From the sequence record MK250029.1: a stretch of 64,000 nucleotides of DNA; one strand, 5' to 3'. The position numbers and the translations under genes are program-made. Numbering within the stretch: the first letter of the stretch is position 1; each line of letters starts with the position of its first letter. Under the pieces are notes generated by a model. The model was given only the letters and a program-made list of their open reading frames with translations. It was not told where the DNA came from and searched no databases. Of the stretch, positions 10,831-29,324 are shown in pieces.

Positions 10831-10860
10831 TAAAATAAGTTACTATTTTAAATATTTATT

Positions 10861-13497: not shown

Positions 13498-15015
13498 ATG
13501 AATAAGAAATTATATAATTCTATAGTTAGAGGAATATCAGAGTCATTATAGAAATCATTGTATGAAGGTTTGTTTGATGATGTAGATGATATATTATCAA
13601 ATGATGATATAGATTCTTCTTAGCTAATGGATGATTATTTAAAGAAAGTTATATTGGAAACATTATGTACAATTGATGCTTATCATAATGTTGAAGCAGA
13701 TGAAGATGACGGTTTACCTATGATAAAATAGAATCCTGATAATAATTTATAGTATTATATTGCTCCTTACACTACATATAAACGTGAAAAGTTAGGACCT
13801 AGAAAAAGGAAGAGATATAATTTAAATTATTTCTACAGATATATTTTGACATTTGATGAAACAGGCGGAATAATATTAGATATTACAAAATTCGGTAATA
13901 AAAGAAATTTCATTATTAATGATCAGTTATATTAGTTTATTTGTAAAACTCCATATACAATAAGTGAAATAAAATATCATTTACCATATAATGAATATAC
14001 TCCATATACAGAACAATGGGAGAAAATATGGATAATAGACAGAACACCACTTTCTAAACCAAAAAATATTCCAAATTCATTTGTTAATAATTTTCCAGAA
14101 AAAATAACACCTATGTATTCTGATGAATTAAAAGATGATATGAATCCATCTAATAATTCTATAATAGGCAGAGAATGGTTTACATCAGATGAAATGTTTT
14201 TAACATTTATACAGAAACTTGTAAATAATCAATTTGATATATCAGATGGAGATTTTTTTGTATATAATTAGAATACAATAGATGAACGTAGAAAAGAACT
14301 TTTATCAGGCAATCAGGATAAACAAATAGAAGAAGAAAATGATGCAAAATTGAATTTCAGTAGAAGTATACTGGGCGAAAAATATTATCAAAAATTTAAT
14401 CAAATTTCGCAATATTTTCAAGAAAATAACATAAAATTTTACTTAAAAACAATAAATACGTTCAGAACATGTAAAATTTGCTTAAAAGATACAGTATTGA
14501 ATTTAAGACGTTAGAATGGATATATATTTGATGAGATTGATAATATAGAAGAACCTAATAGAGTAGAACCATTTTTTGAACGATAGCTATTATATAAAAT
14601 GTTTTGTATAATGAAACATGAAAAATTAAATGACTGGAAAATTCAGCAGACTTATGATGAATGTATAAATGGTACTCTGGTAAGTTATAATTTTTATAAT
14701 ACATCAACTTCATATTATGATATAAACACATTACCTATAAAATTTGATAACAAATATGCTATATATAATTTGTATTATGTAATTGGTAAAGCTATATCAG
14801 ACAGTAAACCGATTTATGAATTAGGCGTTAAAAAATTTGACAAATATCCATATCAAAATGATGTAACATTAGGTCCAACATCTATATTAGCTGCTAATGA
14901 AATAGAAACAACAGGTAATGCATCATTTAATATGTCAATGTTCGATTATAGTTATTTAACAGATCAATTAAAGACAATTATTGATAAAGTTTGTAAAAAA
15001 TACAAAATAAAGTGA
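13498..15015 (+). CDS. Hypothetical protein with LYE/LFDD N-terminus, possibly head-internal, 505 aa
   Basis: Continuous code-15 frame that includes track ORF 14599; ends TGA. Confidence 0.65.
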
Positions 15016-15028
15016 AATTGTTATTAAT

Positions 15029-15619
15029 ATGAGAATAACTACATTAAACCAATTAAAAGAATATACTACATATACATATTATAAATTAAATAAACCTGAA
15101 TATACAAAAAAGAAAAAAGTTTATATTTGTCAACCTATTAACTATATAGATGAAGGATATACACATATGGATATATGGTCAGGATATATATTTTATAAAA
15201 CTAATGCAGTTTCCAGGAATGTAGGTTATTATGGTTTTTTATTAGATAAAGAATCAGATGAAACATATAATAATATAATTAAAAAACAACCAAAATATCT
15301 TGGTAAAATTTCACCTATGTGGTATGTAAATACTACATTGTATAATATACAATCTGAAGAAAATTGTAAGTTATATAAAAATCTGAAATTAGAAGAAAAT
15401 CTATTAACAGAAAATAATAAAGCAGTATTTACAGATAAGCATGAAATAGAACAATATATAGATGATATAAGAAATAATATCATTAAGATTCCAGAAGTAG
15501 AACATATTGTTACAATGAAAACATGGTATAATGATAAAGATGGAAATAAAATAGAAGAAACATCAGTTAGACATTTACCAAGTGGAAAAACAGATATAAT
15601 TAAAACAATAATAAAATAA
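15029..15619 (+). CDS. Hypothetical protein, 196 aa
   Basis: ORF track; no TAG. Confidence 0.7.
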   Translation: MRITTLNQLKEYTTYTYYKLNKPEYTKKKKVYICQPINYIDEGYTHMDIWSGYIFYKTNAVSRNVGYYGFLLDKESDETYNNIIKKQPKYLGKISPMWYVNTTLYNIQSEENCKLYKNLKLEENLLTENNKAVFTDKHEIEQYIDDIRNNIIKIPEVEHIVTMKTWYNDKDGNKIEETSVRHLPSGKTDIIKTIIK

Positions 15620-15630
15620 TGTTAAAATTT

Positions 15631-15663
15631 AAAGTCTTCACAATGGTATGTGAAGACTTTTTT
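15631..15663 (+). terminator. Intrinsic terminator
   Basis: AAAGTCTTCACA...TGTGAAGACTTT plus T-run. Confidence 0.75.
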
Positions 15664-15707
15664 ATTTATTATTATATAAACACTAATTAACTATATTTTT
15701 ATAAAAA

Positions 15708-16844
15708 ATGAATACTGAAAATAAATTTAATTATGTTCTTGTCGGCGGAACATTTAATGATAATAAAGGAAAAGAATCTGGTGTAGTGAATAAATTATAT
15801 CACGCATTAGGTACATTTAATTCTGTTATGTATAATGGTGGTAATTATTTCGATTTGGTTGGTAATGCTTTATCATCTATTACAGAAACAGATCTTATTA
15901 TATGGATGGCAGATGTAGATAATACTAAAGAGAAAATATATCCAGTTAAAAATACAGGTTCTGTATTAATTTGCTCAAAAGTTATTAGAGACGGTTATAC
16001 ATATAAAGATGCAATTGCACGTATATTTAAAATGCATGGTAATGCTGTTATTGCAATCGCAAAAGATAGTAAAACAAATATGTTTATGTTTGAATTTTGG
16101 GATGCATTAGCAAATTGTTGGTACAGTGGTTCTGATATTGAAAAATTAGCATTAACAATATATAGATTTTATATATTCAGTAAAGGCAGTATTCGTCGAC
16201 AAACAGCACGAGATACCTCATTAATTAAATATAATGATGGTAGACCTGATGATTTAAATGATTTTATTAGGTTGAATAATAGTCTTGCTGATTTTATTCA
16301 AACGTCGTGTGGTGATAGGTTTTTCGGTAATTTATCTACACGTTGTCAAAAGTTATTTCCATCAGAACGTGATGGTAAATTTATTTATGTAAGTCCAAGA
16401 AATGTAGATAAACATAGGTTAACTCCTTCTGATTTTGTTTTATTTAATACAGATGATTATACTTATTATTCAGTAGATGAAAAAATAAAGCCATCTGTTG
16501 ATTCTCCTGTACAATCTGAAATATATAAAGAATTCCCATCTATCAATTATATGATTCATGGACATGCATTTATATCTATTATGAAAGAGTTAGATGAAAA
16601 TAATATTCCATGTGCAAGTACAGAGAATTATTTTCCATGTGGAGACTTAAGAGAATTAACAGAAGTAAAGAAACTTATGAAACATATCATATATGATGAA
16701 TGTCATAAAGATTATGGTATAATAAATTTGAAAGGACATGGTTTTTTAATGTTCAGTCAGACTTTTGAACAAATGAAATATATGATTAATGATATATATG
16801 CATTCAAAATGAATGATGGTAAACAATTATTTAAATTTTATTAA
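15708..16844 (+). CDS. Protein with a C-terminal class II aldolase/adducin-like domain, 378 aa
   Basis: FGNLSTR, SPRNVDK, KPSVDSPVQSEIY, MIHGH and LKGHG match the aldolase II pattern, with substitutions. Confidence 0.65.
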   Translation: MNTENKFNYVLVGGTFNDNKGKESGVVNKLYHALGTFNSVMYNGGNYFDLVGNALSSITETDLIIWMADVDNTKEKIYPVKNTGSVLICSKVIRDGYTYKDAIARIFKMHGNAVIAIAKDSKTNMFMFEFWDALANCWYSGSDIEKLALTIYRFYIFSKGSIRRQTARDTSLIKYNDGRPDDLNDFIRLNNSLADFIQTSCGDRFFGNLSTRCQKLFPSERDGKFIYVSPRNVDKHRLTPSDFVLFNTDDYTYYSVDEKIKPSVDSPVQSEIYKEFPSINYMIHGHAFISIMKELDENNIPCASTENYFPCGDLRELTEVKKLMKHIIYDECHKDYGIINLKGHGFLMFSQTFEQMKYMINDIYAFKMNDGKQLFKFY

Positions 16845-16846
16845 TA

Positions 16847-17542
16847 ATGGGAAAATTCAATATTAAATCATTATTTGTTGAAGAAACAAATACAGACGAT
16901 GAAGTTAAAGATACTACAGTCGAAACTTCAAATAATTCAAATAATAAACCAAATGTAGAAAGTAATGTATCTACAACAAACGTACAATCACCAGCATCTG
17001 TTCCAGCTGATGCATCAGTTAATTCTGGAAAGGAAGAAGTAAATCAAGAACTTCTTAATAAACTATGTAATTATCTAGAAACATGTAAAATCGAAGGTGG
17101 TGATTATATGCAACTTAAAAAAGCGGCAAACAGTGATGGAATGAAAGTTATTCCAGATGAAGCTGTCAGATTCCAAGCTGCATATGCAACGCTAAAAAGT
17201 GTAAATCCAAATCTTACAAAAGATATTATTATCAATTCTATTGATACATATATTTCTGAAATGAATAAGCAATATGATATTGCTATTAAACAGATTGAGG
17301 AAAAAAGAAAGATTAATGTAGGTGATAAGAAAAGAGCACATGAGGAGAAAGCTCAACGAATTGCAATGCTTCAAAAAGAGATTGTAGAATTATCTACTGA
17401 AATGACAAAATTATCTGATGAAATTAAAGAAGGTGATGCAGAATGTGATAAGAATGTAAAGGAATTTAGAAATGCTGTAAATGTTATTGTATCTGCATTG
17501 GAATCAGATAAGAAAAAGATTTCTGAAAAGTTAGTAAATTAA
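16847..17542 (+). CDS. Coiled-coil hypothetical protein, first gene of the ABC/PspA-like module, 231 aa
   Basis: Disordered N-terminus and long C-terminal heptad region. Confidence 0.7.
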   Translation: MGKFNIKSLFVEETNTDDEVKDTTVETSNNSNNKPNVESNVSTTNVQSPASVPADASVNSGKEEVNQELLNKLCNYLETCKIEGGDYMQLKKAANSDGMKVIPDEAVRFQAAYATLKSVNPNLTKDIIINSIDTYISEMNKQYDIAIKQIEEKRKINVGDKKRAHEEKAQRIAMLQKEIVELSTEMTKLSDEIKEGDAECDKNVKEFRNAVNVIVSALESDKKKISEKLVN

Positions 17543-17546
17543 TAAT

Positions 17547-17729
17547 ATGAGAGTAATAATTAAAAATTACGATTCTACAAAAGCAAAAGATATTATTATT
17601 CCTGTAGAAAATAATATGGATAAACATGTAGACTTTTCAGGTGGTTATGTTGTATTAAATGATGCAGATGGTAATAAAGTTGTTTATGTAGATTTTATGA
17701 AATATCCTGAAGTAACATTAGATTTATAA
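17547..17729 (+). CDS. Small hypothetical protein, 60 aa
   Basis: ORF track; fills the operon gap. Confidence 0.55.
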   Translation: MRVIIKNYDSTKAKDIIIPVENNMDKHVDFSGGYVVLNDADGNKVVYVDFMKYPEVTLDL

Positions 17730-17744
17730 TAATTAAATAAAAAT

Positions 17745-18809
17745 ATGGCAGAATATAACACAAGTGATATTGTAAATGTAGCAAAAAATACAGTATCAAA
17801 ATGGGAAAAACCTGGTGGAACAACAGGTATGATTGTATTAGGTGTTGTAGTAGGTGCAATTGCAATTAATATTACACCTATTATGAATTTTATTGCAGCA
17901 GCATGCGCAAGCACACTATCTGCAATTGGTATGGCAGCAGCACTTTTTCTAGTTTTATATTGTTTATTTGATCCTCGTATTCGTAATATTGGTTCAACAA
18001 TATATTTTATGATTATGCGTAAGATTGAAGGTCTTCTTGTTGATTATGATCCAATCTCTATTGTTAAGAGAAAGATTATGCAGATGAATAAGAAGATTCA
18101 GGAAATTACCGATAATATGGGAAAGCTTCGAGGTCTTATTGATAAATCAGAAAAACGTATTCAAGATAAAAAGAAACAATGTGATCATGATTTTCAACTA
18201 TTAAATAAGTATAAAGAAACTGGTAAAGCACAAGATGCTGCTGTATATGAACGACAAGTTACTCGCCTTACTGAAGTAATTAAAAATTCAGAAGCACGAC
18301 TTATTCAGTCAAAGCAATGGTATGAAATTATGGGTAAACTGAAACACCAGGCTGAATTAACAGTACTTGATGCAACAAATGAAGTAAATGAACGTGTAGA
18401 AGAGTGGGAAATGATTAAAGCACAGCATAAGGCATTTACATCTATTGTTGGAATTATTAATGGTAAGGATGATCAGTTTAGCTTATTTACTCGTGCAATG
18501 GATCATATGGCTGATGATATTTCACAGAAACTTGGAGAAATGTCATTTATCATCGAGGAAACAGGTGGTTTGATGTCAAAGATTGATATGGATAATCTTG
18601 TGATGTCAGATAAAGCAAATGCACTTCTTGCACAATATAATTCTGGTGGTCTTGATGCTGTTCTTCTTGGAAGTTTTGCAAAGCAACCAATTGAACACGC
18701 ACCAGCAGAAAATGTAGAGTTCAAAGAAGCAGAATTTACAAATTTGAATACTATTACAAATAATAGGAATAATGTACAACAAACATTAGGTCAACCAAAT
18801 TGGTTTTAA
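17745..18809 (+). CDS. Membrane protein with two N-terminal hydrophobic helices and a PspA/IM30-like coiled coil, 354 aa
   Basis: GMIVLGVVVGAIAI and LSAIGMAAALFLVLYCLF helices, then ~200 aa of heptads. Confidence 0.55.
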   Translation: MAEYNTSDIVNVAKNTVSKWEKPGGTTGMIVLGVVVGAIAINITPIMNFIAAACASTLSAIGMAAALFLVLYCLFDPRIRNIGSTIYFMIMRKIEGLLVDYDPISIVKRKIMQMNKKIQEITDNMGKLRGLIDKSEKRIQDKKKQCDHDFQLLNKYKETGKAQDAAVYERQVTRLTEVIKNSEARLIQSKQWYEIMGKLKHQAELTVLDATNEVNERVEEWEMIKAQHKAFTSIVGIINGKDDQFSLFTRAMDHMADDISQKLGEMSFIIEETGGLMSKIDMDNLVMSDKANALLAQYNSGGLDAVLLGSFAKQPIEHAPAENVEFKEAEFTNLNTITNNRNNVQQTLGQPNWF

Positions 18810-18816
18810 TAAAATT

Positions 18817-18854
18817 AAAGAGAATTGTGTAAAAATACATGATTCTCTTTTTTT
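18817..18854 (+). terminator. Intrinsic terminator
   Basis: AAAGAGAATTGTGT...ACATGATTCTCTTTTTTT. Confidence 0.6.
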
Positions 18855-18871
18855 ATTTTAAAAAATATATG

Positions 18872-18879
18872 TATCTTTG
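18872..18879 (+). promoter_or_regulatory. Bacteroidota-type -7 promoter box (TAnnTTTG)
   Basis: TATCTTTG in a context shared by six copies, upstream of ATG 18901. Confidence 0.65.
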
Positions 18880-18900
18880 AATTAATAAAATATTTATGTT

Positions 18901-19230
18901 ATGATAAAAATAGTTGATACATCATATTATATTATTAATAATAAAGAAAAGAAAGAATTATTTATATATTACGATACAGAACATAAATTGGATTGTAATA
19001 TGGATATACTTTCTTTTCAATTAGATTTTAATCTCAAAGATATTGATAATGATAATAAAGATGAAATTATTGAACAATATTTTAAAGATAATTGGACAAG
19101 ATTTTTTATGATAAAATCAGTACCATATGGAGATTTAATGTCTATTGGTATTTCATTTGAACAAATATTAAATATGGTTAATGAAATAGCTAAATCAAAA
19201 ATAATATTTGAAGATTATAAATCAATTTAA
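18901..19230 (+). CDS. Hypothetical protein, 109 aa
   Basis: ORF track. Confidence 0.6.
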   Translation: MIKIVDTSYYIINNKEKKELFIYYDTEHKLDCNMDILSFQLDFNLKDIDNDNKDEIIEQYFKDNWTRFFMIKSVPYGDLMSIGISFEQILNMVNEIAKSKIIFEDYKSI

Positions 19231-19318
19231 TAGACTTTTTAATAAACACGATATAAAAGAAAAATAGAGAATAATATTAAACATTAATTTAAATAACTTT
19301 AATTAAGAATTAAAAATT

Positions 19319-20908
19319 ATGGCAAATGTTGTTTTGCGACCTTGGGTAAAGGTTGTTGGTGTTATTGCAGTTGTTGCTGCAATTATGTTTGGTGCTTCTA
19401 AATTTTTTGGAGGCAGTAATGATGGTGATAATAAGTCATCGAGTGACAGCGGCGGTTTTTTCAGCGGCATGTTTTCTGGTGGTGATGATGATGTAATCAC
19501 CATTGGTACAAATACTTATGCAGGTTTTCTGCCATTTATGTATTTGAATAATGGTCTTGAACCTAATGAAGATTGTCCTATTTATAAGGAATATGGACTT
19601 AAGTTGAAGATTATTGTTCAGGATGATTTTGCTGCAGGACGTGCAGCATTCAATAATGGTGATATTGACATTATTTATTGTACTGCAGATGCTCTTCCTG
19701 TCGAGATGAGTGAAGGTTCAAATATGAATGATGCTCGCTTCTTTAATGTATCAAATTGGTCACGTGGTGCTGATGCTATTGTAGTTAATAAGAGTATTCA
19801 GAATGTAAGTAACTTGATTGGTAAGGTTGTTTGTTGCTCACAGGGTACAGCATCTCATACACTGTTGTTGAATACACTTGAAACAAATGGTATTGGAGCT
19901 GATAAGGTAAATATGGGAAATTCTACAGATCCTAATAAGGTTAATATTAAGGTTGTAGATAACGGTCTTGAAGCTGCTTCTGCATTCCGTGCAGGTTCTT
20001 GTGATGCAGCTGTTGTATTCTCTCCAGATGATCAGGATTTGGTTGCAACTGTAAAGGGTGCACATGTATTGATTTCAACAAAGCAAGCATCTAATATTAT
20101 TTGTGATGGTTTGATTGCAAAGCAGAGCTACCTTGATTCTAATAAAGAGAATGTAAAGAAACTTATTTCTGCATTGTTGTATGCAAATGATAAAATGAAT
20201 AGTGACGAAGCAGCAGTAAAGATTGCAGCTAAGGCTTTTGCAAAGGCATATGGAACAGATGAGAAGTTTGCAATTGATGGTTCTAAGAATATTCATTATA
20301 TTACATTGGGAGATGCACAGAACTTCTTTGGTTTGAATAGTTCATATACAGGTATGCAGGGTGATGAGCTATATTCAAAGATGGCACGTACTTATGAAAA
20401 GTTGGGTCTTTGTAAGAAACCACTTTCATGGCGAAAAGTTTCTTATCCTGATATTATTGAATCACTTGCAGCTAATGCTGGTGAAGTAAAGGGTGATCAG
20501 GCTGCAGAAGCATCAGTAAAGTTTAAAGAAACATCTACATCTGATGCAGAAACAAAGACTGCAATTTCAGATAAGAAGGTAACTATTGAATATCCTGTTG
20601 ATAGTGATATTCTTGATAATAATGCGCAGTGTATTATTGATAGAGAGTTCGCTGGTATTGCAAAGCAGTTTGCAGGTGCAAAGATTCGTATTGTAGGAAA
20701 TACTGATAATACTGGTAATTATGCATATAATGTTGAATTGTCACGAAGACGTGCACAATCAGTTGCAAATTATCTTGTGAAGGAATATGGATTTGATAAG
20801 AATCGATTCATTATTGTTGGTAATGGTCCTAAACGTGCAGTAGAAGATAAGGTAGTAGGAAGTAATAATGCATATCGTACTACAGATTTTCAGTTGGTAA
20901 CAGAGTAA
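19319..20908 (+). CDS. ABC substrate-binding protein (NMT1/SsuA/TauA-like) fused to a C-terminal OmpA-like peptidoglycan-binding domain, 529 aa
   Basis: N-terminal TM anchor; WSRGADAIV, GTASHTLL and IICDGL SBP motifs; OmpA_C motif GNTDNTGNYAYNVELSRRRAQSVANYL...NRFIIVGNG...YRTTDF. Confidence 0.85.
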   Translation: MANVVLRPWVKVVGVIAVVAAIMFGASKFFGGSNDGDNKSSSDSGGFFSGMFSGGDDDVITIGTNTYAGFLPFMYLNNGLEPNEDCPIYKEYGLKLKIIVQDDFAAGRAAFNNGDIDIIYCTADALPVEMSEGSNMNDARFFNVSNWSRGADAIVVNKSIQNVSNLIGKVVCCSQGTASHTLLLNTLETNGIGADKVNMGNSTDPNKVNIKVVDNGLEAASAFRAGSCDAAVVFSPDDQDLVATVKGAHVLISTKQASNIICDGLIAKQSYLDSNKENVKKLISALLYANDKMNSDEAAVKIAAKAFAKAYGTDEKFAIDGSKNIHYITLGDAQNFFGLNSSYTGMQGDELYSKMARTYEKLGLCKKPLSWRKVSYPDIIESLAANAGEVKGDQAAEASVKFKETSTSDAETKTAISDKKVTIEYPVDSDILDNNAQCIIDREFAGIAKQFAGAKIRIVGNTDNTGNYAYNVELSRRRAQSVANYLVKEYGFDKNRFIIVGNGPKRAVEDKVVGSNNAYRTTDFQLVTE

Positions 20909-20917
20909 TAAAAAATA

Positions 20918-20977
20918 TAAACATGCGGTTTATAGAATAATATAATCTTAATTATATTCTATAGATCGCATGTTTTT
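20918..20977 (+). terminator. Long hairpin terminator
   Basis: AAACATGCGGTTTATAGAATA...TATTCTATAGATCGCATGTTTTT. Confidence 0.65.
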
Positions 20978-20986
20978 AATTTAGTT

Positions 20987-21439
20987 ATGAAATATAGAAA
21001 TGATTTAATAGGTAAAAAAATTTTAATTATATGTAATAGTATAGGCAACAGTTATAAAAGGTTATATTGTTCTTATGTATTAGGAAAAATAATTGAATAT
21101 AACCCAGCTACAAATAAGATTATGGTTATTAGAAATACTGGACATATTGGTTCAGCTGTTGAATTTAAAATTAATAATCATGATCCTTTTGAATATCCAT
21201 ATTATTTTGATAATCGGTTCGCAACAAGAGAACCAGAAAATGATAATGAAACATGGTGGTATGTAGCATTTGCTGATGATGAAGCTATACAATTATTAAA
21301 ACAAAATTTATTAAAACAAAATAATAGAAGACCTGTATATAAATCATACTACCTATCAACTGTTTGTTATGGTAAACATAAATCTAAAAAAGAATATTTA
21401 ACATATCTATTAAATGAATTAAACAATGAATCTAATTAA
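20987..21439 (+). CDS. Hypothetical protein inserted in the ABC module, 150 aa
   Basis: ORF track; overlaps the permease start. Confidence 0.6.
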   Translation: MKYRNDLIGKKILIICNSIGNSYKRLYCSYVLGKIIEYNPATNKIMVIRNTGHIGSAVEFKINNHDPFEYPYYFDNRFATREPENDNETWWYVAFADDEAIQLLKQNLLKQNNRRPVYKSYYLSTVCYGKHKSKKEYLTYLLNELNNESN

Positions 21440-22262
21440 ACGTCTATTTAAATTTGGTGGTGATTCTGATTTTGGAACAGTTACCAATGTAATTATTAGT
21501 ATTATTGGTGCAGTTATTATTATTATGGGATGGCATTGTATTTCAGCATATAACGTAGTACCTAGTAATATTCTTCCTGATCCTTTTAAAGTGATTGGTA
21601 GTATTCCAACATTAATTTCAGAAAATCATTTATTTGCAAATATTTGGTATACAGTAAAATTGAATTTATCATGTTATGTGTATGCTATTTTATTTTCATT
21701 TCCTATAGGATTCTTAATTGCATTGTATCCTATTAATAATATCTTATTTGGAAAATATATTAATTCAGTCCGATTTATTCCATTACCTTCTATTACAGGA
21801 ATTTTCCTTGCAATATTTGGTTTGACATTTGGAATGAAGGTATGGTTTTTGACAGTTGCAATTATGATTTATATTATTCCATCTGTTGTAAATAAAGTAA
21901 ATGATTTGCAAAACCCTGCTAATGAAAAAGATAATGTATATTTGCAAACTGCACAGACAATCGGAATGTCTTCATGGCAAAAATTCTGTTATGTATATTT
22001 CCCTTATGTAACAGGTGGTGTAGTTGATTCTTGTATTGACTTATTGGCTATTAGTTATAGTTATGTTGTTATTGCAGAAATGATTTATAAAGATGGTGCA
22101 GTAAGTGGAATGGGTGCATTGATTAATACAATGGTTAGACAATCACAAATGGCATCTGCATTTGCATTACTTTTCCTTATTATTATTATCGGTTGTGTAC
22201 AAGATTTTCTTTTTAAGAAAGGTGCAAAACTATTATTTCCTTACAAATATAAAAATGAATAA
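21426..22262 (+). CDS. ABC permease (SsuC/TauC-like), 278 aa
   Basis: ILPDPFKV, multiple TM helices, RFIPLPSI, EAA loop YLQTAQTIGMSSWQKFCYVYFP, VVIAEM...GMG. Confidence 0.9.
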   Translation: MNLIKRLFKFGGDSDFGTVTNVIISIIGAVIIIMGWHCISAYNVVPSNILPDPFKVIGSIPTLISENHLFANIWYTVKLNLSCYVYAILFSFPIGFLIALYPINNILFGKYINSVRFIPLPSITGIFLAIFGLTFGMKVWFLTVAIMIYIIPSVVNKVNDLQNPANEKDNVYLQTAQTIGMSSWQKFCYVYFPYVTGGVVDSCIDLLAISYSYVVIAEMIYKDGAVSGMGALINTMVRQSQMASAFALLFLIIIIGCVQDFLFKKGAKLLFPYKYKNE

Positions 22263-22267
22263 AAATT

Positions 22268-23212
22268 ATGAGTGATTTTAAAACATTATTCGGACAAACA
22301 AATAATAATCAAGACGAGAAAAAGAATGATATTATTTCTGAACAGAATAATACATCTGTAGATGATTCTAATATACAATCAAAGAATACAAATTCACAAG
22401 TAATTAATACTACAACTGATGGCAAATATGAATGTGAAGATGTAGATGTATTTAATTTTGTAAATATCAATAAATCATTTGGTGATTTTAAGTTATTTGA
22501 TAATCTTAATCTTACTATTAAAGACTTTAAAGATGAGGGTCAATTCATTACATTTATAGGTCAATCTGGATGTGGAAAAACTCAGCTTCTTAAGATGATC
22601 TCTGGAATCTCAAAACCAGATTCAGGTAAGATTATGTTATATGGTAAGGAAATTAAAGAATCTGATAATATACCTATGGTATTTCAGCAGTATTCAAGTT
22701 TTGAATGGATGACTGTTCTAGAAAATATCGCATTACCTATGAAACTTGCTGGCATTGATAAGAAAACACGTGAAGAAAGAGCACGTAAAATTATTAATCT
22801 TATAGGTCTAGATGGTAGTGAAAATAAGTATTGTAGATATGGTGTATTATCTGGTGGTATGTTGCAACGAGCATCAATAGGTAGAGCATTAGCATGTGAT
22901 TCGAAACTATTGATGTTAGATGAATATTCATCTGGTCTTGATTATTTTACAAAATTTGAACTTCAAGATTTGCTTCTTAAAATTTTCAATAATAGAGATG
23001 TTGACAGAACATTTCTTATGGTAACACATGATATTTCAGAGGCAGTTTACCTTTCTAATAGAATTTATATTTTGGAACCAAATCCATGTAGAATTAAGGA
23101 TATTATCGATATTAAATTCAGTCAACCACGAACACAAGCTATTCGTGAAACAGATGAATTTAAAGACTATTACGCAAAAGTTTTAAAGGCATTAAATGAA
23201 ACTGTTAAATAA
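22268..23212 (+). CDS. ABC ATPase (SsuB/TauB/NrtD-like), 314 aa
   Basis: Walker A GQSGCGKT, Q-loop VFQQ, signature LSGGM, Walker B LLMLDE, H-loop VTHD. Confidence 0.92.
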   Translation: MSDFKTLFGQTNNNQDEKKNDIISEQNNTSVDDSNIQSKNTNSQVINTTTDGKYECEDVDVFNFVNINKSFGDFKLFDNLNLTIKDFKDEGQFITFIGQSGCGKTQLLKMISGISKPDSGKIMLYGKEIKESDNIPMVFQQYSSFEWMTVLENIALPMKLAGIDKKTREERARKIINLIGLDGSENKYCRYGVLSGGMLQRASIGRALACDSKLLMLDEYSSGLDYFTKFELQDLLLKIFNNRDVDRTFLMVTHDISEAVYLSNRIYILEPNPCRIKDIIDIKFSQPRTQAIRETDEFKDYYAKVLKALNETVK

Positions 23213-23217
23213 ATTAT

Positions 23218-23529
23218 ATGGTATTTTCAGAATTAACAAATAATAATACAGTTACTATATATACAAAAAATGAGGTAAATACTTATTTTGTAAAACGAAT
23301 AGAATCTAATGATATTTCAACAAATGTCATATTAGAAGACTATAATTATATGATTACAGTTCCAAGAGATGTATCATTTTATATATTACATATAAATAAT
23401 GATATTTCTATTATCACATGTGACAATAGAATAATTGAGTTAATTAATACGGTTAAGAGATTAACAAAAAATTCTATAGGTCTTCAGCTAAATGAACTAT
23501 TTGGAAATGTATTCAAAACAAATATTTAA
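23218..23529 (+). CDS. Hypothetical protein, 103 aa
   Basis: ORF track. Confidence 0.55.
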   Translation: MVFSELTNNNTVTIYTKNEVNTYFVKRIESNDISTNVILEDYNYMITVPRDVSFYILHINNDISIITCDNRIIELINTVKRLTKNSIGLQLNELFGNVFKTNI

Positions 23530-23583
23530 TTATAAATCATGGGTATTTTTTATCCATGATTTTTTTATTTTGAATAAAATATG

Positions 23584-23591
23584 TATCTTTG
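23584..23591 (+). promoter_or_regulatory. Bacteroidota-type -7 promoter box
   Basis: TTGAATAAAATATG-TATCTTTG, just after a terminator hairpin (~23534-23567). Confidence 0.7.
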
Positions 23592-23617
23592 TATTATTAA
23601 TAAAATAATTAATTATT

Positions 23618-24142
23618 ATGAAGCAGTCTAAATTGTATACTAAGAATGAAGGAGGAAATTGTCATAGAGGTCATAATCATGGTTCTGAAAAGAAATACAG
23701 ATCTCGATATGATAGACATAAAAAGATTACAAAATTTGAAATTGATAATGAAATAACAAGGAAGAAATCTCATTATAATAAAAATAAACGAACAAATTAT
23801 GATTATGGGCCTCTATATAATTACTTACTTAAACAAGTAGGAAAGAAATGGGAAACTGTATGGAAAGATATATTTCCACGTGTTGATAATAATCCTGAAC
23901 CTATTGTATATATGGTTATAAATATAAATACACATGGAATTGTTATTACGCATGATATAAGTAATGCAGAACCTATGTTTAACTGTTCATTATACAATAA
24001 TGGTGTTCGTTCTTATTCAACATTGTATGTTGATGAAAATGATATATTACAATTTGTTGATAAAGATTTCAAACCCAATGATAGATATGAAGGTCTTGGC
24101 TTTGGACAATCTTTCAATGGAAAAGAAATTTCTACCATATAA
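23618..24142 (+). CDS. Basic hypothetical protein, 174 aa
   Basis: ORF track; YDYGPLYNYLLKQVGKKWETVW segment. Confidence 0.7.
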   Translation: MKQSKLYTKNEGGNCHRGHNHGSEKKYRSRYDRHKKITKFEIDNEITRKKSHYNKNKRTNYDYGPLYNYLLKQVGKKWETVWKDIFPRVDNNPEPIVYMVININTHGIVITHDISNAEPMFNCSLYNNGVRSYSTLYVDENDILQFVDKDFKPNDRYEGLGFGQSFNGKEISTI

Positions 24143-24166
24143 TTTTTTTATTTGGAATAAAAGGTG

Positions 24167-24174
24167 TATCTTTG
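24167..24174 (+). promoter_or_regulatory. Bacteroidota-type -7 promoter box
   Basis: GGAATAAAAGGTG-TATCTTTG. Confidence 0.65.
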
Positions 24175-24216
24175 TATTGTTAATGAAATAATAAACAATT
24201 AAAAATATAAAGAAAA

Positions 24217-24543
24217 ATGAGAGCAAATTTCACAACAGTTATCAAAAAGAGAGCAATTAAAAATGTACCAGCATTTCATGAGTTCTCTATGAGACAGATT
24301 AAGGTTATTAGTAATTCAGCTAATTATCCAAATTCTGTTACATTGTCTATGGACATTTATTGTGATAATGTTGATGGATATATTTTCAATAATGCATCTA
24401 CAAATGAGCAATATGCACTTACTGCAATTCAACTCAGTGAAGCATTACAGAAGATGATAAATAATAGAAAATGTTATAAGCCTAATAGTGAATCTGATTT
24501 GCTTAGACTTACATTTGATATTATTGAATCTTTTAAATTTTAA
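24217..24543 (+). CDS. Hypothetical protein, 108 aa
   Basis: ORF track. Confidence 0.7.
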   Translation: MRANFTTVIKKRAIKNVPAFHEFSMRQIKVISNSANYPNSVTLSMDIYCDNVDGYIFNNASTNEQYALTAIQLSEALQKMINNRKCYKPNSESDLLRLTFDIIESFKF

Positions 24544-24554
24544 TTGATTTAATG

Positions 24555-24583
24555 TAGACAATAATAAGATATTAGTATATAAT
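24555..24583 (+). promoter_or_regulatory. Sigma70-like promoter TAGACA-N17-TATAAT upstream of the tRNA
   Basis: Exact 17-nt spacing. Confidence 0.5.
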
Positions 24584-24803
24584 ATATAAATTGTTTAATG
24601 AAACAAATTAATGAATTTAAAATTAAATTTANNNNNNNNNNNNNNNNNNNNNNNNNAATTAATAATAAATAACATATAAATAATATAATAATTAAAAACA
24701 AACGCTTATTTAATTTTCGTAGCGTTATGGATAAGTTGAATGTAGAATTCAGAAATTCCTTTTAGGACGAAGATACACCACATGGCGAGGTGGTGGAATT
24801 GGT

Positions 24804-25111
24804 AAAGTGTTTGCCTGCATTAATTTGTAGAATCCATCAAATTCAGTATCAGTTAGGATTAAATTTTGAATATGAGTAGTCGCTATTGACAAAAATATTG
24901 ACAATAATTAAATTATTGTTACCTGAGGAATAAGTGTTTATTAAATAAACAACGAAGAAGCTGACTAAGAAAACCTAAGGTCTTCATAAGAAGATAGCTT
25001 GGTAATACTGAGCCAAGATAATTTTAATTATAAGGTGCAGAGACTATACGGTGGGAACTAATAGCAAGTTAAGATATAGTCCAAACTTTATAGAAATATA
25101 AAGAGTTTTTG
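24804..25111 (+). mobile_element. Group I intron in the tRNA D-loop (308 nt, no ORF)
   Basis: P1 GGUAAA/UUUGCC puts U.G at the 5' splice site; P7 GACTAT 25042-25047 pairs with ATAGTC 25076-25081; terminal G 25111. Confidence 0.85.
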
Positions 25112-25126
25112 AGACACGAGGGACTT

Positions 25127-25466
25127 AAAAAATTTGAGTGCTCTATTGAGAAATCATAGAAGTAGAATCTCCCTAACGAAACGGAAACCTAATTATTGGT
25201 GACAATAATGGTGGTGACGAACTCACTAAGTTGTTATAGAACGCGAATCTATATTAAATGTAAATTGAAGTGTTACAGCATAAATGGCGAAGAGACTATA
25301 GAGGAGATACCTAAGTTAAAGTACACAAAGAATAATCATTTTTGATTATCACTATATATGAAGAATTTATAATAAGGAATGCGCATTACTTTAATATGGT
25401 AGTAAAATAGTCCAGACTACAACATCTTAATTTTAAGGTGGCTTATGTTAAAGTAAGAGTAGTAAG
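25127..25466 (+). mobile_element. Group I intron in the anticodon, U^AA (340 nt, no ORF)
   Basis: P1 ACUUAAA/UUUGAGU with U34.G; P7 GACTAT 25294-25299 pairs with ATAGTC 25407-25412; terminal G 25466. Confidence 0.88.
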
Positions 25467-25519
25467 AAAATCCCTTGGACAGTAATGTCCGTGCCGGTTC
25501 GATCCCGGTCCTCGCTACT

Positions 25520-25556
25520 AAAGTCTGATAACTAATATAGTTATCAGACTTTTTCT
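25520..25556 (+). terminator. Intrinsic terminator after the tRNA
   Basis: AAAGTCTGATAACTA-A-TATAGTTATCAGACTTTTT. Confidence 0.8.
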
Positions 25557-25596
25557 TTTTTATAATATATATAAATTATAATTAATAATTTTAATC

Positions 25597-26733
25597 ATGA
25601 TTACAATAACAGAACAATATATAAAGGATTATAAAGATAAGTTAGATAAAATCGCAAAGTCATTCGATTTGGGTAAACAGAAAATAATCGTTGAAGAATT
25701 ATCTATTAAAGTTTCAGCACCAGATTTTTGGGATGATTTTGAAAATGCAACAACTATTACAAAGGAACTTAATACAGCAAAAGAAAAGATTAAAGATGTT
25801 TCACTTATCAATATGTTAATAGATGATCTTGAAACTGCTTTAATGTATTATAAAGAGTTTGAAGGTAAGGATGAAGAAGAACTTGTTAATCTTGCTAATG
25901 ATGAATTAATTAAAGAATTTAAAATATTTGAAAACAAATATAGATTTGTAGATCCTACTGATTCATTGGGTGCAGTATTAGATATTAATGCAGGTGCAGG
26001 TGGAACAGAAGCAAATGATTGGGCAAATATGTTATTCAGAATGTATGATATGTGGGCTAAATCAAATGGTTATAAATTTAAGATTTTATATTATTCAGAA
26101 GGTGATAAAGTAGGTATTAAAAATGTATCTATTGAAATTACCGGTAATAATGCATATGGTACATTAAAAGGTGAAACTGGTGTTCATCGTCTTGTTCGTG
26201 TTTCCCCTTATAATGCGCAGGGAAAGAGAATGACAAGTTTTGCGGCAGTTTCTGTTGTTCCGTTGGTAGATAATTCAATTAAAGTTGAAATTGATGAGTC
26301 TAAATTAACAATAGATACATTTAGATCTTCTGGTGCAGGAGGACAAAATGTTAATAAAGTTGAATCAGGTGTACGTGTAAATTATATGTATACAGATCCT
26401 GATACAGGTGAAACTGAAAAGATTCAGGTTGCAAATACAGAAACACGTGATCAACCAAAAAATAAGGAACGTGCAATGCAGATTCTTAAATCTATTCTTT
26501 ATAAAAAAGCGTTAGATAAACAACTTGCAAAGAAAAAGGAAATTGAAGATGCTAAACTAAAAAATGAATGGGGTGCACAGATTAGATCTTATGTATTTGA
26601 TGATAAGCGTGTAAAGGATCATCGTACTGGTTATCAAACAACTGATGTAGATTCTGTTATGAATGGAAATTTAAATGGATTTATAGAATCTTATAATAAT
26701 TGGATAATTGAGCAGGAAAATAATAAACTTTAA
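25597..26733 (+). CDS. prfB: Peptide chain release factor 2, 378 aa
   Basis: GAGGTEANDW, GETGVHRLVRVSPY (SPF-like specificity tripeptide), SGAGGQNVNKVES, QIRSYV; no programmed frameshift. Confidence 0.93.
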   Translation: MITITEQYIKDYKDKLDKIAKSFDLGKQKIIVEELSIKVSAPDFWDDFENATTITKELNTAKEKIKDVSLINMLIDDLETALMYYKEFEGKDEEELVNLANDELIKEFKIFENKYRFVDPTDSLGAVLDINAGAGGTEANDWANMLFRMYDMWAKSNGYKFKILYYSEGDKVGIKNVSIEITGNNAYGTLKGETGVHRLVRVSPYNAQGKRMTSFAAVSVVPLVDNSIKVEIDESKLTIDTFRSSGAGGQNVNKVESGVRVNYMYTDPDTGETEKIQVANTETRDQPKNKERAMQILKSILYKKALDKQLAKKKEIEDAKLKNEWGAQIRSYVFDDKRVKDHRTGYQTTDVDSVMNGNLNGFIESYNNWIIEQENNKL

Positions 26734-26790
26734 TATATATTCATTATATAAGTATTTAATGAATTATTTTTCTATTTAAATAAAAATGTG

Positions 26791-26798
26791 TATCTTTG
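26791..26798 (+). promoter_or_regulatory. Bacteroidota-type -7 promoter box
   Basis: TTAAATAAAAATGTG-TATCTTTG. Confidence 0.7.
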
Positions 26799-26838
26799 TA
26801 TTGTTAATAAAATAATAAACAATTAAGAATATAAAGAT

Positions 26839-27057
26839 ATGAAAATTAAGGTTGGTAGAAATAATGAGTTCGTAGAACTTGAAGAATATGATTCAATTGT
26901 AATTATTGATGATAATGGTCATGAATTTCGTATCTCTCCTACACAGAAATGTTGGGGTAAGGGTTTTGAAATTAATGATCCTGATGGAAGTTTGGTAATT
27001 CGTCCATGTGTATCTAATGAAGTAATGGTATTTTCATCTTCAGAAGTTGGTTTGTAA
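26839..27057 (+). CDS. Small hypothetical protein, 72 aa
   Basis: ORF track. Confidence 0.7.
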   Translation: MKIKVGRNNEFVELEEYDSIVIIDDNGHEFRISPTQKCWGKGFEINDPDGSLVIRPCVSNEVMVFSSSEVGL

Positions 27058-27136
27058 ATTATAACTTTCATTAATAACGCAATCACAATAATTATTATTT
27101 TACAGTTTGATTTTAAACTAAATTTAATTATTATAT

Positions 27137-27688
27137 ATGAGTTGTCATACTTGGGTTTACAAACGTATTGATTCAATGTCTCGTGAAGAGATTAATCAAG
27201 AAATTGATTGTGTTATTAATGAACGTTTATCTCGTGCATACATGAGTGAAAATGAAGAGGAATATGCAAATAAAATGGTTAAATTAACAAAAGACAGTTC
27301 AATTTCTCCATTATCATATTCAGATGCAATTAAACGATATAAAGAAGCACGATATGAAACATCACTTATTGTAAAGAAATTACAGGAAGCTAAACGTACA
27401 GGTGATTTATCTCTTATAACAGATATAAATGGATTTGATACAGCAGAAAATAATACATATCTATTTTTATGTAATGATATGCCATTTAGATGTTATGATT
27501 ATACAGATAAACAATGTTATAATAAAGATGAGCTTATTGAATTTGTACATACAGTTGAACCAAATAATATTGCAATATATGATGAAAATAATAATCAGCA
27601 TATAGGTATTCCTGTAGACATAGATGAACGAATATCTGATTTTTTTGATAAACATGGTATTAACAATTTATTAATTGAATTTGGTTGA
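27137..27688 (+). CDS. Hypothetical protein, 183 aa
   Basis: ORF track; MSCHTWVYK start. Confidence 0.75.
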   Translation: MSCHTWVYKRIDSMSREEINQEIDCVINERLSRAYMSENEEEYANKMVKLTKDSSISPLSYSDAIKRYKEARYETSLIVKKLQEAKRTGDLSLITDINGFDTAENNTYLFLCNDMPFRCYDYTDKQCYNKDELIEFVHTVEPNNIAIYDENNNQHIGIPVDIDERISDFFDKHGINNLLIEFG

Positions 27689-27689
27689 T

Positions 27690-28142
27690 ATGAGAACAAA
27701 TATAGATTTACATCCTATTGCTATAGGATATACAAATTGTGATATTGAACTTGATTCATTTTCATTACTTTGTTGTCTTGATGAAATAGGGTTTACATAT
27801 CCAAAAACAGACAAATATTTAAATGTAGGTGCATGTAGGAATTTAAGAGAATTTAATGAGATACATGATAAAATATATTATTATATGATTTATGATTTTC
27901 TATGTTCTACATATGGTATTTCTGTAACATTTTTTGAGGGTGAATCTATTTCATATAATGAACGAGGTGTAATAGAAAAAGTTGAAGTTGATGGAATGGA
28001 TAAAGAATCTGATATATACAAGATTATATCAAATATGGTATTTGATAATATTAATATTGCATATAAGACTGTTGCACATATGATCGTATCAGATTTAAAT
28101 TGGAGACATATTCAAAAGAAAAATTTTTCTAAGATAAAATAA
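27690..28142 (+). CDS. Hypothetical protein, ~150 aa
   Basis: ATG 27690 directly follows the previous stop. Confidence 0.65.
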   Translation: MRTNIDLHPIAIGYTNCDIELDSFSLLCCLDEIGFTYPKTDKYLNVGACRNLREFNEIHDKIYYYMIYDFLCSTYGISVTFFEGESISYNERGVIEKVEVDGMDKESDIYKIISNMVFDNINIAYKTVAHMIVSDLNWRHIQKKNFSKIK

Positions 28143-28212
28143 GACTTTATTATTAAACACATATATAAAGAATAATTAATTTAACATATTAACTTTTAAA
28201 TTTAGATTTAGC

Positions 28213-28776
28213 ATGGGATTATTTGAACTTTTTAATAAGAAAAATGCTGCAGATGTAAGTACATTGTTTACTGATGAAAATAAAGTTTCTATTTCAGCAG
28301 CAGATGCATATAAGAAGTCTCGCTATGGTATCTTGAAATCTGATAAGATGATGCTTGAAGAATTCTTTACAGATGTAAAACTTATGGTAGAGCAGAAGAA
28401 TATGGAGCGTAGTTATTGTGGTATGCTTCAGCTTGATGATGACATTATTAAGTTTCTTCCTCGTATTAAGGATCGGTTGATGCGTCAACTTGGATTTAAA
28501 GTAATCATTCTTGATGATAATTCTGTTATTACAAATAAAGAATTGAAGTCAGAAGATACAATTAAAACAGGTAGTACATTTGTTTTGCTTGTATGGAATA
28601 AACAGGCAATTGAGGAAGTTGAAGAAATGAAAGCAAACAATTTGTTGGAACCTATTTCAGATGACTCATCAATTGCAACAGAAACAGTAGATTCTATTAA
28701 GGATGAAAAGAAAGAGGAAATAACTCCTGCTATTTCTGGAAATTCTAATCCTATGAAGAAACATCTTAATAGTTAA
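28213..28776 (+). CDS. Hypothetical protein, 187 aa
   Basis: ORF track; AAGACT-N17-TATAAA at 28141-28169. Confidence 0.75.
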   Translation: MGLFELFNKKNAADVSTLFTDENKVSISAADAYKKSRYGILKSDKMMLEEFFTDVKLMVEQKNMERSYCGMLQLDDDIIKFLPRIKDRLMRQLGFKVIILDDNSVITNKELKSEDTIKTGSTFVLLVWNKQAIEEVEEMKANNLLEPISDDSSIATETVDSIKDEKKEEITPAISGNSNPMKKHLNS

Positions 28777-28794
28777 AAAAAAATTGTTAAAATA

Positions 28795-28823
28795 TAGACT
28801 TTTTAAATATTAAGACATATAAT
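28795..28823 (+). promoter_or_regulatory. Sigma70-like promoter TAGACT-N17-TATAAT
   Basis: Exact spacing; no ORF before the terminator at 29241. Confidence 0.5.
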
Positions 28824-28829
28824 ATATAA

Positions 28830-29280
28830 AATAAATATAGTGATACTAAATTTAAATATGTTTGATAAGTTATATATTTAAGTCATTGGAAGAATTTAAA
28901 TTATAACATACATATAAAAATTTGATTAAATTATATTTATAAAAAAGATAAGATTTAGATAATTATTTTTCTATATATTTAATATATAGTTTTCTTAGGT
29001 TAACTTCACATATATTATATGTTATTAAGTTAAATATCTAAATAATAAGAATAGAGAAAATGGTGATTATATGATTATACATAAGATGTTTTTTAATTAT
29101 CCTTAGTTTTTAAATGTATAATCATTTCCGTTTAAATGTTTTGGTTTTGGATAATTAACAATCATTTAAACAAATTAAAAAGAAGGGAGTGTTTATCACT
29201 TAGATAAACACAAAAGAAGAAAAGGAAAGATAGATGATAAGAGTGAAAGTCGTTGTGATAACGGTTTTCACTCATTTTTT
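28830..29280 (+). ncRNA. Candidate structured ncRNA of unknown class
   Basis: ORF-free unit between a promoter and a terminator; stems 29071-82/29114-25, 29130-38/29163-71 and 29189-97/29203-11; 10-bp loop-loop complementarity. Confidence 0.4.
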
Positions 29281-29281
29281 T
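29241..29281 (+). terminator. Intrinsic terminator
   Basis: GAGTGAAAGTCGTT-GTGAT-AACGGTTTTCACTC plus T-run. Confidence 0.75.
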
Positions 29282-29316
29282 ATTATTTAATATTTTTATA
29301 TTTAAATAAAAATGTG

Positions 29317-29324
29317 TATCTTTG
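29317..29324 (+). promoter_or_regulatory. Bacteroidota-type -7 promoter box
   Basis: TTAAATAAAAATGTG-TATCTTTG, same context as 26791. Confidence 0.7.

Follow-up and report, generated by a model that had tools for sequence, protein, structure and literature searches.

Related systems and the Lak-C1 locus

Proteins of the PspA/ESCRT-III type are universal scaffolds for the repair and remodelling of membranes. Their coupling to other envelope functions in bacteria is, to our knowledge, largely unknown. Bacterial operons described by Ravi et al. (2024, mSystems, PMC11237479) encode PspA together with a divergent Snf7 protein anchored in the membrane, the ATPase and the permease of an ABC system, a binding protein of the PBPb-OmpA type and an AAA+ protein of two domains; the authors suggest that membrane remodelling and the transport of solutes are connected, and give as an example OGG56892.1 of Candidatus Handelsmanbacteria (section 18, Table S3). 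A survey of huge phages by Yuan and Chen (bioRxiv 10.64898/2026.10.24.761521, October 2026) reports 189 pspA genes, 15 of which adjoin complete ABC transporters (binding protein, ATPase, permease). Many such phages come from the human gut, and the neighbourhoods are read in terms of membrane-stress management. A related group of genes is described here in the Prevotella phage Lak-C1, at positions 16847-23212 of a stretch of 64,000 nucleotides of record MK250029.1 (hereafter, the window). Its conserved core, called here the Lak cassette, is made of the genes g1, g3, g5, g7 and g8, which encode, respectively, a soluble coiled-coil protein, a membrane-anchored PspA/IM30-like protein, a solute-binding protein ending in an OmpA-like domain, a permease and an ABC ATPase.

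The Lak cassette is, judging from homology and gene content, a phage-borne variant of an operon type already flagged by comparative genomics. In both the Lak cassette and the operons of Ravi et al. an anchored protein of the ESCRT-III superfamily, a binding protein carrying an anchor or signal plus an OmpA domain, a permease and an ABC ATPase are found together, which is the combination that sets the class apart. Some of the published operons include an AAA+ protein with an inactive N-terminal half, and a counterpart stands beside g1-g3 in two bacterial loci described below (L048, L070). The two types differ in several respects. A canonical soluble PspA gene is present in the published operons, whereas the second coiled-coil gene of Lak, g1, is not PspA; hidden Markov model (HMM) searches, a home-made PspA model included, detect no separate canonical PspA gene among the open reading frames (ORFs) of the window, and G001, a partial Lak-like record, gives no match to the curated PspA model TIGR02977. 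No counterpart of the two-domain AAA+ gene was found in the window or in G001. Gene order differs, and the Lak version is carried by a phage and broken by three lineage-specific small ORFs. The operon was published only as a neighbourhood, and the likening of g3 to OGG56892.1 is one of description.

The pspA genes of Yuan and Chen encode proteins of 200-300 amino acids (aa) having PF04012 as best Pfam match; g3 is longer, has transmembrane (TM) helices and no Pfam match on record, and therefore probably falls outside that set. Neither the preprint nor Ravi et al. treats proteins of the g1 type, describes the Lak cassette or its distribution among phages and bacteria, or places it in a recoded genome; the preprint likewise makes no mention of an OmpA tether, of counterparts in bacteria or of a TAG-free setting. 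An earlier note on this DNA had presented the locus as a strong candidate for an undescribed system, a view no longer tenable given the related bacterial operon and the phage PspA-ABC neighbourhoods just cited. The same note had mentioned a similar bacterial arrangement of no assigned function, and this is borne out both by section 18 and Table S3 of PMC11237479 and by the bacterial loci reported below.

Three roles had been proposed in that note, namely nutrient capture, envelope stabilisation and superinfection exclusion; the anatomy of the encoded proteins favours a combination of envelope stabilisation and solute import. We read the five genes as an envelope-maintenance cassette that would couple inner-membrane upkeep to the import of a small solute during infection, and give this reading a probability of about one half. 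Anatomy, homologies and conservation are described in the following sections; the mode of action and the timing are what we infer from them.

Conservation of the five genes in phages

The order g1-g3-g5-permease-ATPase is found in at least nine viral lineages, at identities to Lak that go down to 20-25%. The full cassette is present in Lak A/B/C, in the Lak-related IMG/VR contigs L008, L010 and L011, in a viral contig of 54.7 kb (L012), in the 735-kb phage LR756501 (L002) and in two IMG/VR contigs of 128 and 223 kb (L046, L047). It is also carried by the metagenomic contigs L014, L027 and L028, which may be viral or bacterial; in a further metagenomic contig (L013) g1, g3 and g5 are followed by the contig end. 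The earlier note had held whole ABC importers to be rare in phages; this particular cassette is common in huge phages. A scan of IMG/VR with patterns of the g1 family returned two loci, a low count that says little because the patterns are narrow. Across the lineages, in phages as in bacteria, the core genes are joined by tight or overlapping junctions.

Ratios of nonsynonymous to synonymous substitution (dN/dS) were obtained by comparing Lak-C1 with a Lak-B-type contig, a pair in which the ATPase is not comparable. Values for the core genes (g3 0.057, g7 0.070, g5 0.138, g1 0.29) denote purifying selection. The three small ORFs g2, g4 and g6 evolve more loosely (0.40, 0.35 and 0.54, respectively). 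A decaying passenger can be excluded on the grounds of these ratios and of the intact motifs of the encoded proteins. The five core genes are, by their order and their mode of evolution, one conserved unit. The earlier note had taken them for a functional unit, a view that would have fallen had they not co-occurred elsewhere or had they shown relaxed selection; neither is the case.

The small ORFs are a different matter. Homologues of g2, g4 and g6 are found only in Lak A/B/C, and are missing in L008, L010, L012, L002 and the bacterial loci. In L008, which is about 70% identical in g5, the five core genes stand back to back; g2, g4 and g6 are therefore insertions, and not parts of the machine. 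Neither g4 nor g6 matches any family in NCBIfam, PHROG or PADLOC. The g6 family is restricted to Lak. In Lak-B three of its members stand in tandem in the interval from g5 to the permease gene and a fourth copy lies downstream, which makes the Lak-B locus longer.

In the Lak-B contig (L005) the permease, 94% identical to g7, is directly followed by an ATPase that is complete in its motifs and shares the first 10 residues with g8, although it is only 40% identical to it. About 1 kb downstream, a 3' remnant of an ATPase gene of the Lak-C1 type (93% identity) is still found. The Lak-B ATPase gene has thus, as judged from these alignments, been replaced by a functional-looking allele, and not lost.

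Partial versions of the cassette are also found in phages. In one lineage (L015) g3 stands alone, beside DnaJ. In L025 and L026, two independent samples, a g3 homologue (protein P0124, 40% identity) is fused in frame to an ABC ATPase fragment, g1 is split in two ORFs, and binding protein and permease are missing; the locus looks like a decayed cassette. The Ralstonia phage RsoM2USA (MG752970, L082), a cultured jumbo phage of 344 kb, carries the g1-g3 pair as gp55/gp54 without the transporter (HMM E values of 4e-13 and 3e-80); both proteins are annotated as hypothetical. Additional genes flank some full cassettes: in L028 a Band_7/SPFH gene is found directly upstream, and in L014 the cassette is followed by a weak match to classical AAA+ ATPases (E 1e-5).

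The coiled-coil proteins g3 and g1

In the AlphaFold2 model of g3 (mean predicted local distance difference test score, pLDDT, 78) two TM helices, at about residues 25-75 (about 23-79 in the domain layout adopted here), are followed by a helix (77-101), a helical hairpin (103-158/162-235) and a further helix (244-279). The g3 family includes 751 clusters at 50% identity (E <=1e-3), nearly all of 320-360 aa, and an alpha0-like helix and a 'DP' motif are among its conserved features. NCBIfam and PHROG give no match to g3, and no Pfam entry is recorded for any of its close relatives. Foldseek searches with the model rank Vipp1/PspA first, at weak scores (E 9e-3 to 0.1), and PspA/IM30 proteins are also returned by searches of the ESM atlas and of BFVD. 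With VIA-align, BAR domains score as well (Z about 11) as PspA 4whe (Z 10.9), all these values being too low to carry meaning for helical proteins.

Comparison of profiles is more telling. With hhalign, the g3 family is matched to 14 spirochaete PspA proteins at 54% probability (E 1e-4) and to 23 merged PspA proteins at 94.8%. The match to 9 Bacteroidota PspA proteins reaches 95.9% (E 6.4e-9, 209 columns), in a comparison set that was picked up because the g3 profile itself matches those proteins; the set is in turn matched to spirochaete PspA at 98.7%. Controls with reversed sequences give 0.2%. The g3-PspA alignment spans the alpha0-like helix, the 'DP' motif and the whole core. As profile-profile comparison matches what curated models miss, g3 belongs, on this homology, to the PspA/IM30 (ESCRT-III) superfamily, as a distant and membrane-anchored member and not as a canonical PspA.

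At the N-terminus of g1 a short motif is conserved; it is followed, in the AlphaFold2 model, by a disordered linker (about residues 11-65), a small domain of three helices (67-119) and a helix of about 100 residues (125-228). Fold searches retrieve nothing beyond single-helix coiled coils (Z <=7.3). The possibility that g1 is a PspA too was discarded, hhalign probabilities against PspA being only 9.5% and 15.7%. Of the two coiled-coil genes, only g3 is hence PspA-like. In every module locus examined g1 lies directly upstream of the g3 homologue.

The resemblance of g3 to PspA/Vipp1 (IM30) consists of profile homology over the whole PspA core, alpha0-like helix included, and possibly of the hairpin seen in the model. 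LiaH-LiaI offers a second parallel, as there an effector is tied to a small membrane anchor; in g3 the anchor is fused to the effector. The Lak cassette differs from both the PspA and the LiaH-LiaI systems in that the anchor is covalent and no PspB, PspC, PspF, LiaF, LiaS or LiaR partner accompanies it.

The ABC transporter and its putative wall tether

The ATPase g8 has all the features of the ATPases of type-I importers of the NitT/TauT family. Walker A, Q-loop, the signature LSGGM, Walker B with the catalytic E, D-loop and H-loop are all present, and the catalytic motifs are kept in 15 aligned family members. The best NCBIfam matches are SaoA (1e-53), an NrtD-type model (7e-52) and TauB (2e-49), all under the curated cut-offs (for SaoA, 182 bits against 360). 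The permease g7 has at least five hydrophobic segments by hydropathy and matches phrog_6743, SaoP (5e-17) and TauC (1e-8), the latter two below cut-off; BPD_transp_1 is the Pfam entry on record for its relatives. Its coupling loop has TauT-like spacing and keeps the conserved G and P, with Q-T-A (Q/x-T-x in the family) where E-A-A is expected. The transporter had been described as complete and intact in all ATPase motifs and in the EAA loop; the statement holds for the former, and for the loop has to be limited to G and P.

The binding protein g5 has a single N-terminal hydrophobic anchor, a binding domain at about residues 60-400, a linker, and an OmpA-like domain at about 420-525, and matches phrog_25518 over its full length. 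The binding domain scores with SsuA_fam (9e-18, 64 bits against a cut-off of 163), and the closest solved binding protein to the family profile is SsuA 2x26 (E 6e-11). The C-terminus is matched by the YiaD, Pal, OmpA and MotB models at 5e-16 to 1e-5, below curated cut-offs, and the family profile is matched to solved OmpA-like domains at 1e-25. In the motif NTD..LSxxRA..R, the R of LSxxRA is invariant across the aligned family, and the D of NTD is found in all 12 aligned sequences, the two phage G copies excepted. An OmpA_C profile match together with the residues D and R, which make contact with the peptide stem in such domains, marks the C-terminus as a putative peptidoglycan-binding domain. 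Because of the anchor at one end and the OmpA-like domain at the other, g5 is predicted to be held at both, tied to the membrane at the N-terminus and to the cell wall at the C-terminus.

All three parts of the Lak transporter belong to the domain families that make up the SsuABC, TauABC and NrtABCD importers. They differ in that the binding protein carries a membrane anchor and an OmpA-like wall-binding domain, and in that all scores are well below curated cut-offs. Given such scores, a substrate cannot be assigned. Nor does g5 look like a routine sulfonate binder, an outcome that would have weakened the earlier proposal, as it remains under the cut-off of every sulfonate, taurine or other equivalog model.

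The transporter could simply supply sulfur, nitrogen, phosphorus or a vitamin precursor for phage replication, the coiled-coil genes being unrelated neighbours. The best family matches, which are to sulfonate, taurine, nitrate and Sao-type importers, fit with this. So does Bacillus phage G (L001), which infects a Gram-positive host and encodes a permease, an ATPase and two tandem binding-protein-OmpA/MotB genes (gp243, gp245, gp249, gp250), g1 and g3 being not detectable in it, as well as the frequent occurrence in bacteria of g1-g3 without a transporter. We regard plain nutrient uptake as rather improbable all the same: unrelated neighbours would hardly keep a five-gene order and tight or overlapping junctions at 20-25% identity in phages and bacteria alike, the scores fall far short of any curated importer, and simple scavenging leaves the peptidoglycan-binding domain without a role.

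Bacterial relatives

At least 2624 relatives of g5 are found in metagenome-assembled genomes (MAGs) of many phyla, where they go under the NCBI name 'phosphate ABC transporter substrate-binding/OmpA family protein'. The close relatives P0318 and P0347 are filed under archaeal MAGs (Methanofastidiosum, Nanoarchaeota), a filing that points to contigs of phages or bacteria binned in error, and not to genes of archaea. Three bacterial loci host the full cassette (L049, L071, L080), in a contig of Candidatus Moranbacteria and in two Bacteroidota genomes, one of which is represented by a contig of 5.97 Mb (L071). The Moranbacteria contig, 55.8 kb long, carries exactly the five genes, and its g5-type protein is identical to one of an NCBI Candidatus Moranbacteria MAG; the neighbours are housekeeping genes encoding topoisomerase I, DprA, HisRS, Pth and signal peptidase. 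The occurrence of the same cassette in bacterial chromosomes disposes of the idea that it is an invention of phages.

Full-length g3 was found in 10 of the 301 Bacteroidota species genomes sampled, the seed genome included, and several genomes carry two copies. In addition to L071 and L080, g3 is found with g5 in L081, in the company of g1 alone at five loci, and by itself at three. A SpoVK-type AAA+ ATPase gene lies beside g1-g3 in L048 and L070. In L048, a Chitinophagales contig of 784 kb, the AAA+ gene is of the SpoVK/CbbX type and precedes g1, g3 and g5; in L070 the group AAA+-g1-g3 is divergent from g5-permease-ATPase. A pattern scan for the g1 family in 185,579 species genomes, made with narrow patterns, gave a sole match, in a Leptospiraceae MAG (L029/L031), where a stand-alone g1 is divergent from a gene for an NfeD/ClpP-like protease.

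In the g3 tree, Lak proteins form a long, phage-only branch (support 100/99), and Bacteroidota copies a clade of their own (97/93); the tree is rooted at midpoint, and two long branches in it are unreliable. On this topology the Lak copy belongs to an old branch of the family that is restricted to phages. That it was captured recently from the lineage of the Prevotella host is unlikely, the Lak clade being long, exclusive to phages and set apart from the Bacteroidota clade.

Another reading is that the five proteins work as a single machine. The wall-tethered ABC module would sense peptidoglycan and periplasm, or couple them mechanically, to the advantage of the anchored ESCRT-III/PspA-like polymer of the cytoplasmic side, the ATPase powering or gating its assembly. 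The ABC pair would then pass on an ATP-driven change, or a signal sensed by g5 in wall or periplasm, with no nutrient being moved, and would take in phages the place of the bacterial AAA+ protein. Fixation to both membrane and wall is odd for a binding protein that should diffuse, and the coupling loop of g7 deviates from E-A-A. In the distant modules L027, L028 and L080, moreover, the OmpA domain is kept and the binding domain is too divergent for the Pfam NMT1 model. In phages the transporter genes are welded to g1-g3, and searches of the window and of G001 did not return the SpoVK-type AAA+ gene seen in L048 and L070. Against this, permease and ATPase are of the ordinary type-I importer kind and none of their motifs is broken, and tethered binding proteins are usual in many importers. 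The L070 locus, furthermore, holds both AAA+ and ABC genes, so one is not simply a substitute for the other. The single machine is thus an unlikely arrangement, and the doubt extends to the ABC-driven step that would replace the AAA+ protein. If real, it would be a device for membrane-wall contact and repair of bacteria and phages, which megaphages would install early in order to hold or reshape the host envelope during a long replication.

The TAG-free block

The genome of the window reads TAG through, as ORF capacity doubles when TAG is not counted as a stop. Seventeen consecutive genes of the + strand, spanning a 16-kb block (4356 codons) that includes the cassette, lack in-frame TAG codons, versus 230 in the 15028 codons outside the block (1.5%). 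In the five core genes alone about 26 TAG codons are expected and none is found (P about 5e-12), in line with what the earlier note had claimed. The same block hosts the gene for release factor 2 (RF2; 404 bits, above the curated cut-off). No tRNA genes were found in the window. Borges et al. (2022, cited in PMC11165621) are the source of the idea that recoding delays late genes in phages of this kind, TAG-free genes being made before the code switch. The cassette, which lies with the RF2 gene in this block, needs no modified translation machinery and would presumably be translated early by that of the host. Codon usage thus suggests that the cassette is expressed before the code switch.

Early membrane and wall proteins might alter the envelope in such a way that later phages are unable to inject. 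Such a barrier against competitors would profit from the early expression that the TAG-free block probably permits; all the products are located in the envelope or associated with it, and the OmpA/MotB-type domain of g5 is similar to that of ZorB at the domain level. Yet PADLOC returns only generic matches to MotB and ABC/AAA domains, and no defence system. Strong purifying selection is observed, with no trace of arms-race diversification in g3, g5 and g7. In bacteria the cassette is chromosomal and has housekeeping neighbours, also in the small genome of a candidate phyla radiation (CPR) bacterium, which fits physiology better than conflict. Superinfection exclusion is accordingly a very improbable function.

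Organization and transcription signals of the locus

The identity of the region 16847-23212 amounts to 100% with the Lak-C1 record, 99% with Lak-A and about 82% with Lak-B. It comprises eight ORFs, each ending in TAA, and all lie on the + strand at the positions previously described (Table 1).

Table 1. Features of the Lak-C1 window and of related loci
Feature	Record	Coordinates	Strand	Remarks
TAG-free block	Lak-C1 window	15029-30953	+	17 consecutive genes
Terminator-like hairpin and T-run	Lak-C1 window	15631-15660	+	-15.2 kcal/mol, z -5.9; upstream of unit
Possible transcription unit	Lak-C1 window	15708-23529		Bounded by hairpins
378-aa gene	Lak-C1 window	15708-16844		Aldolase-like
g1	Lak-C1 window	16847-17542	+	231 aa; soluble coiled-coil partner, not PspA
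g2	Lak-C1 window	17547-17729	+	60 aa; small ORF, Lak A/B/C only; insertion
g3	Lak-C1 window	17745-18809	+	354 aa; 2 TM helices and PspA/IM30-like domain
g4	Lak-C1 window	18901-19230	+	109 aa; small ORF, Lak A/B/C only; insertion
g5	Lak-C1 window	19319-20908	+	529 aa; anchor, NMT1/SsuA-like binding domain, OmpA-like domain
Long RNA hairpin, then U-run	Lak-C1 window	20919-20975	+	g5-g6 gap; -26.6 kcal/mol, z -6.75
g6	Lak-C1 window	20987-21439	+	150 aa; Lak-only small ORF; overlaps g7 start by 14 nt
g7	Lak-C1 window	21426-22262	+	278 aa; ABC importer permease, BPD_transp_1 type, NitT/TauT-like
g8	Lak-C1 window	22268-23212	+	314 aa; ABC ATPase, disordered N-terminal extension of ~60 residues
Terminator-like hairpin and T-run	Lak-C1 window	23534-23562	+	-13.6 kcal/mol, z -4.1; 5 nt past 103-aa ORF
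Short N run	Lak-C1 window	~24549-24701		X in a minus-strand ORF
RF2 gene	Lak-C1 window	25597-26733		In TAG-free block
g6-family copies	L005 (Lak-B type, IMG/VR)	9657-11020 and 14693-15142		
ATPase gene	L005	11849-12838		Replacement allele
ATPase remnant	L005	13895-14287		3' part
AAA+ ATPase match	L014	11707-12831		After cassette
g3-ATPase fusion	L025	8001-9332		P0124
Band_7/SPFH gene	L028	988-1887		Upstream of cassette
g1-family match	L029/L031	10001-10687		Leptospiraceae MAG
g1-g3 pair	L082 (RsoM2USA)	6365-7930		gp55/gp54

Two terminator-like hairpins are the likely 5' and 3' boundaries of a transcription unit that would also contain a gene of 378 aa upstream of g1 and one of 103 aa downstream of g8. 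The former stops 2 nt before g1, is weakly similar in its C-terminal half to class II aldolase/AraD proteins (E 3e-8), and is found in Lak A/B/C only. The latter has an adjacent paralogue in some Lak-A/C-type contigs. The aldolase-like gene and the small ORFs g2, g4 and g6 are Lak-specific passengers.

The small ORFs had been credited with promoters and terminators of their own. The ORFs do exist, and signals of the second kind are found after g5 and after g3. The long hairpin in the g5-g6 gap is terminator- or attenuator-like; none of 200 shuffled sequences folds equally well. An inverted repeat and a T-run are visible between g3 and g4. Promoters, in contrast, find no support, as sigma-70-like sites in the unit region are not in excess over shuffled sequences. 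Bacteroidota promoters are of a type other than sigma-70-like. In runs labelled as RNA, 0.32-0.44 of the sampled words are found, but as assembled contigs, which denote presence and not transcription.

A proposed envelope-maintenance cassette

The reading of the five genes as an envelope-maintenance cassette may be summarised as follows. The first half would work at the cytoplasmic face of the inner membrane, where g3 would be held permanently by its two TM helices, with g1 as soluble partner. The second half is, by family, a type-I importer of the NitT/TauT kind, in which the doubly tethered g5 is joined to the permease g7 and the ATPase g8. Encoded by genes that need no TAG read-through, the cassette could be made at the start of infection, together with the phage RF2. 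Once made, g3 and g1 would form, in the manner of PspA/Vipp1 polymers, an assembly on the inner membrane of the host that would keep the membrane sealed and energised through the long infection of a megaphage. The wall-tethered transporter would import a small solute, plausibly in the size class of sulfonates, nitrate, phosphonates or quaternary amines. As to the genetic coupling, the two halves may respond to one and the same envelope stress, or may share the membrane-wall contact sites at which they act. Both Ravi et al. (PMC11237479) and Yuan and Chen have independently read neighbourhoods of this sort as membrane remodelling or stress management tied to transport.

Several observations weigh against this reading. 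TIGR02977 does not score g3, and the home-made PspA model detects a single one of 104 members of the g3 family (E 0.007). As modelled, the fold of g3 does not by itself separate PspA from BAR-like three-helix domains. No named equivalog (SsuABC, TauABC, NrtABCD, SaoXPA, ThiXYZ) reaches its curated NCBIfam cut-off for the transporter proteins. The families of g1, g3 and g5 are known from sequences and models alone. The bacterial versions accompanied by SpoVK-type AAA+ ATPases suggest an energy-dependent remodelling step, and searches of the window and of the partial record G001 (about 61% complete) returned no ATPase of this type. The two halves may act independently, because bacterial relatives often have g1-g3 without the transporter. 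Early timing is presumed from codon usage only.

The families involved are large and widespread: g3 makes up 751 clusters at 50% identity, and the OmpA-tethered binding proteins exceed 2600. The cassette itself is common to Bacteroidota, one CPR bacterium and many phages that are among the largest known. One operon unites a PspA-type protein, an ABC importer and peptidoglycan, and the relation between membrane remodelling and transport becomes one that can be asked directly. Possible laboratory models are gp55/gp54 of RsoM2USA for the g1-g3 pair, and Bacteroidota chromosomes for the full cassette. For Lak, an uncultured gut phage of 540 kb, the cassette is a candidate early function, by which the phage may manage the envelope of its Prevotella host.

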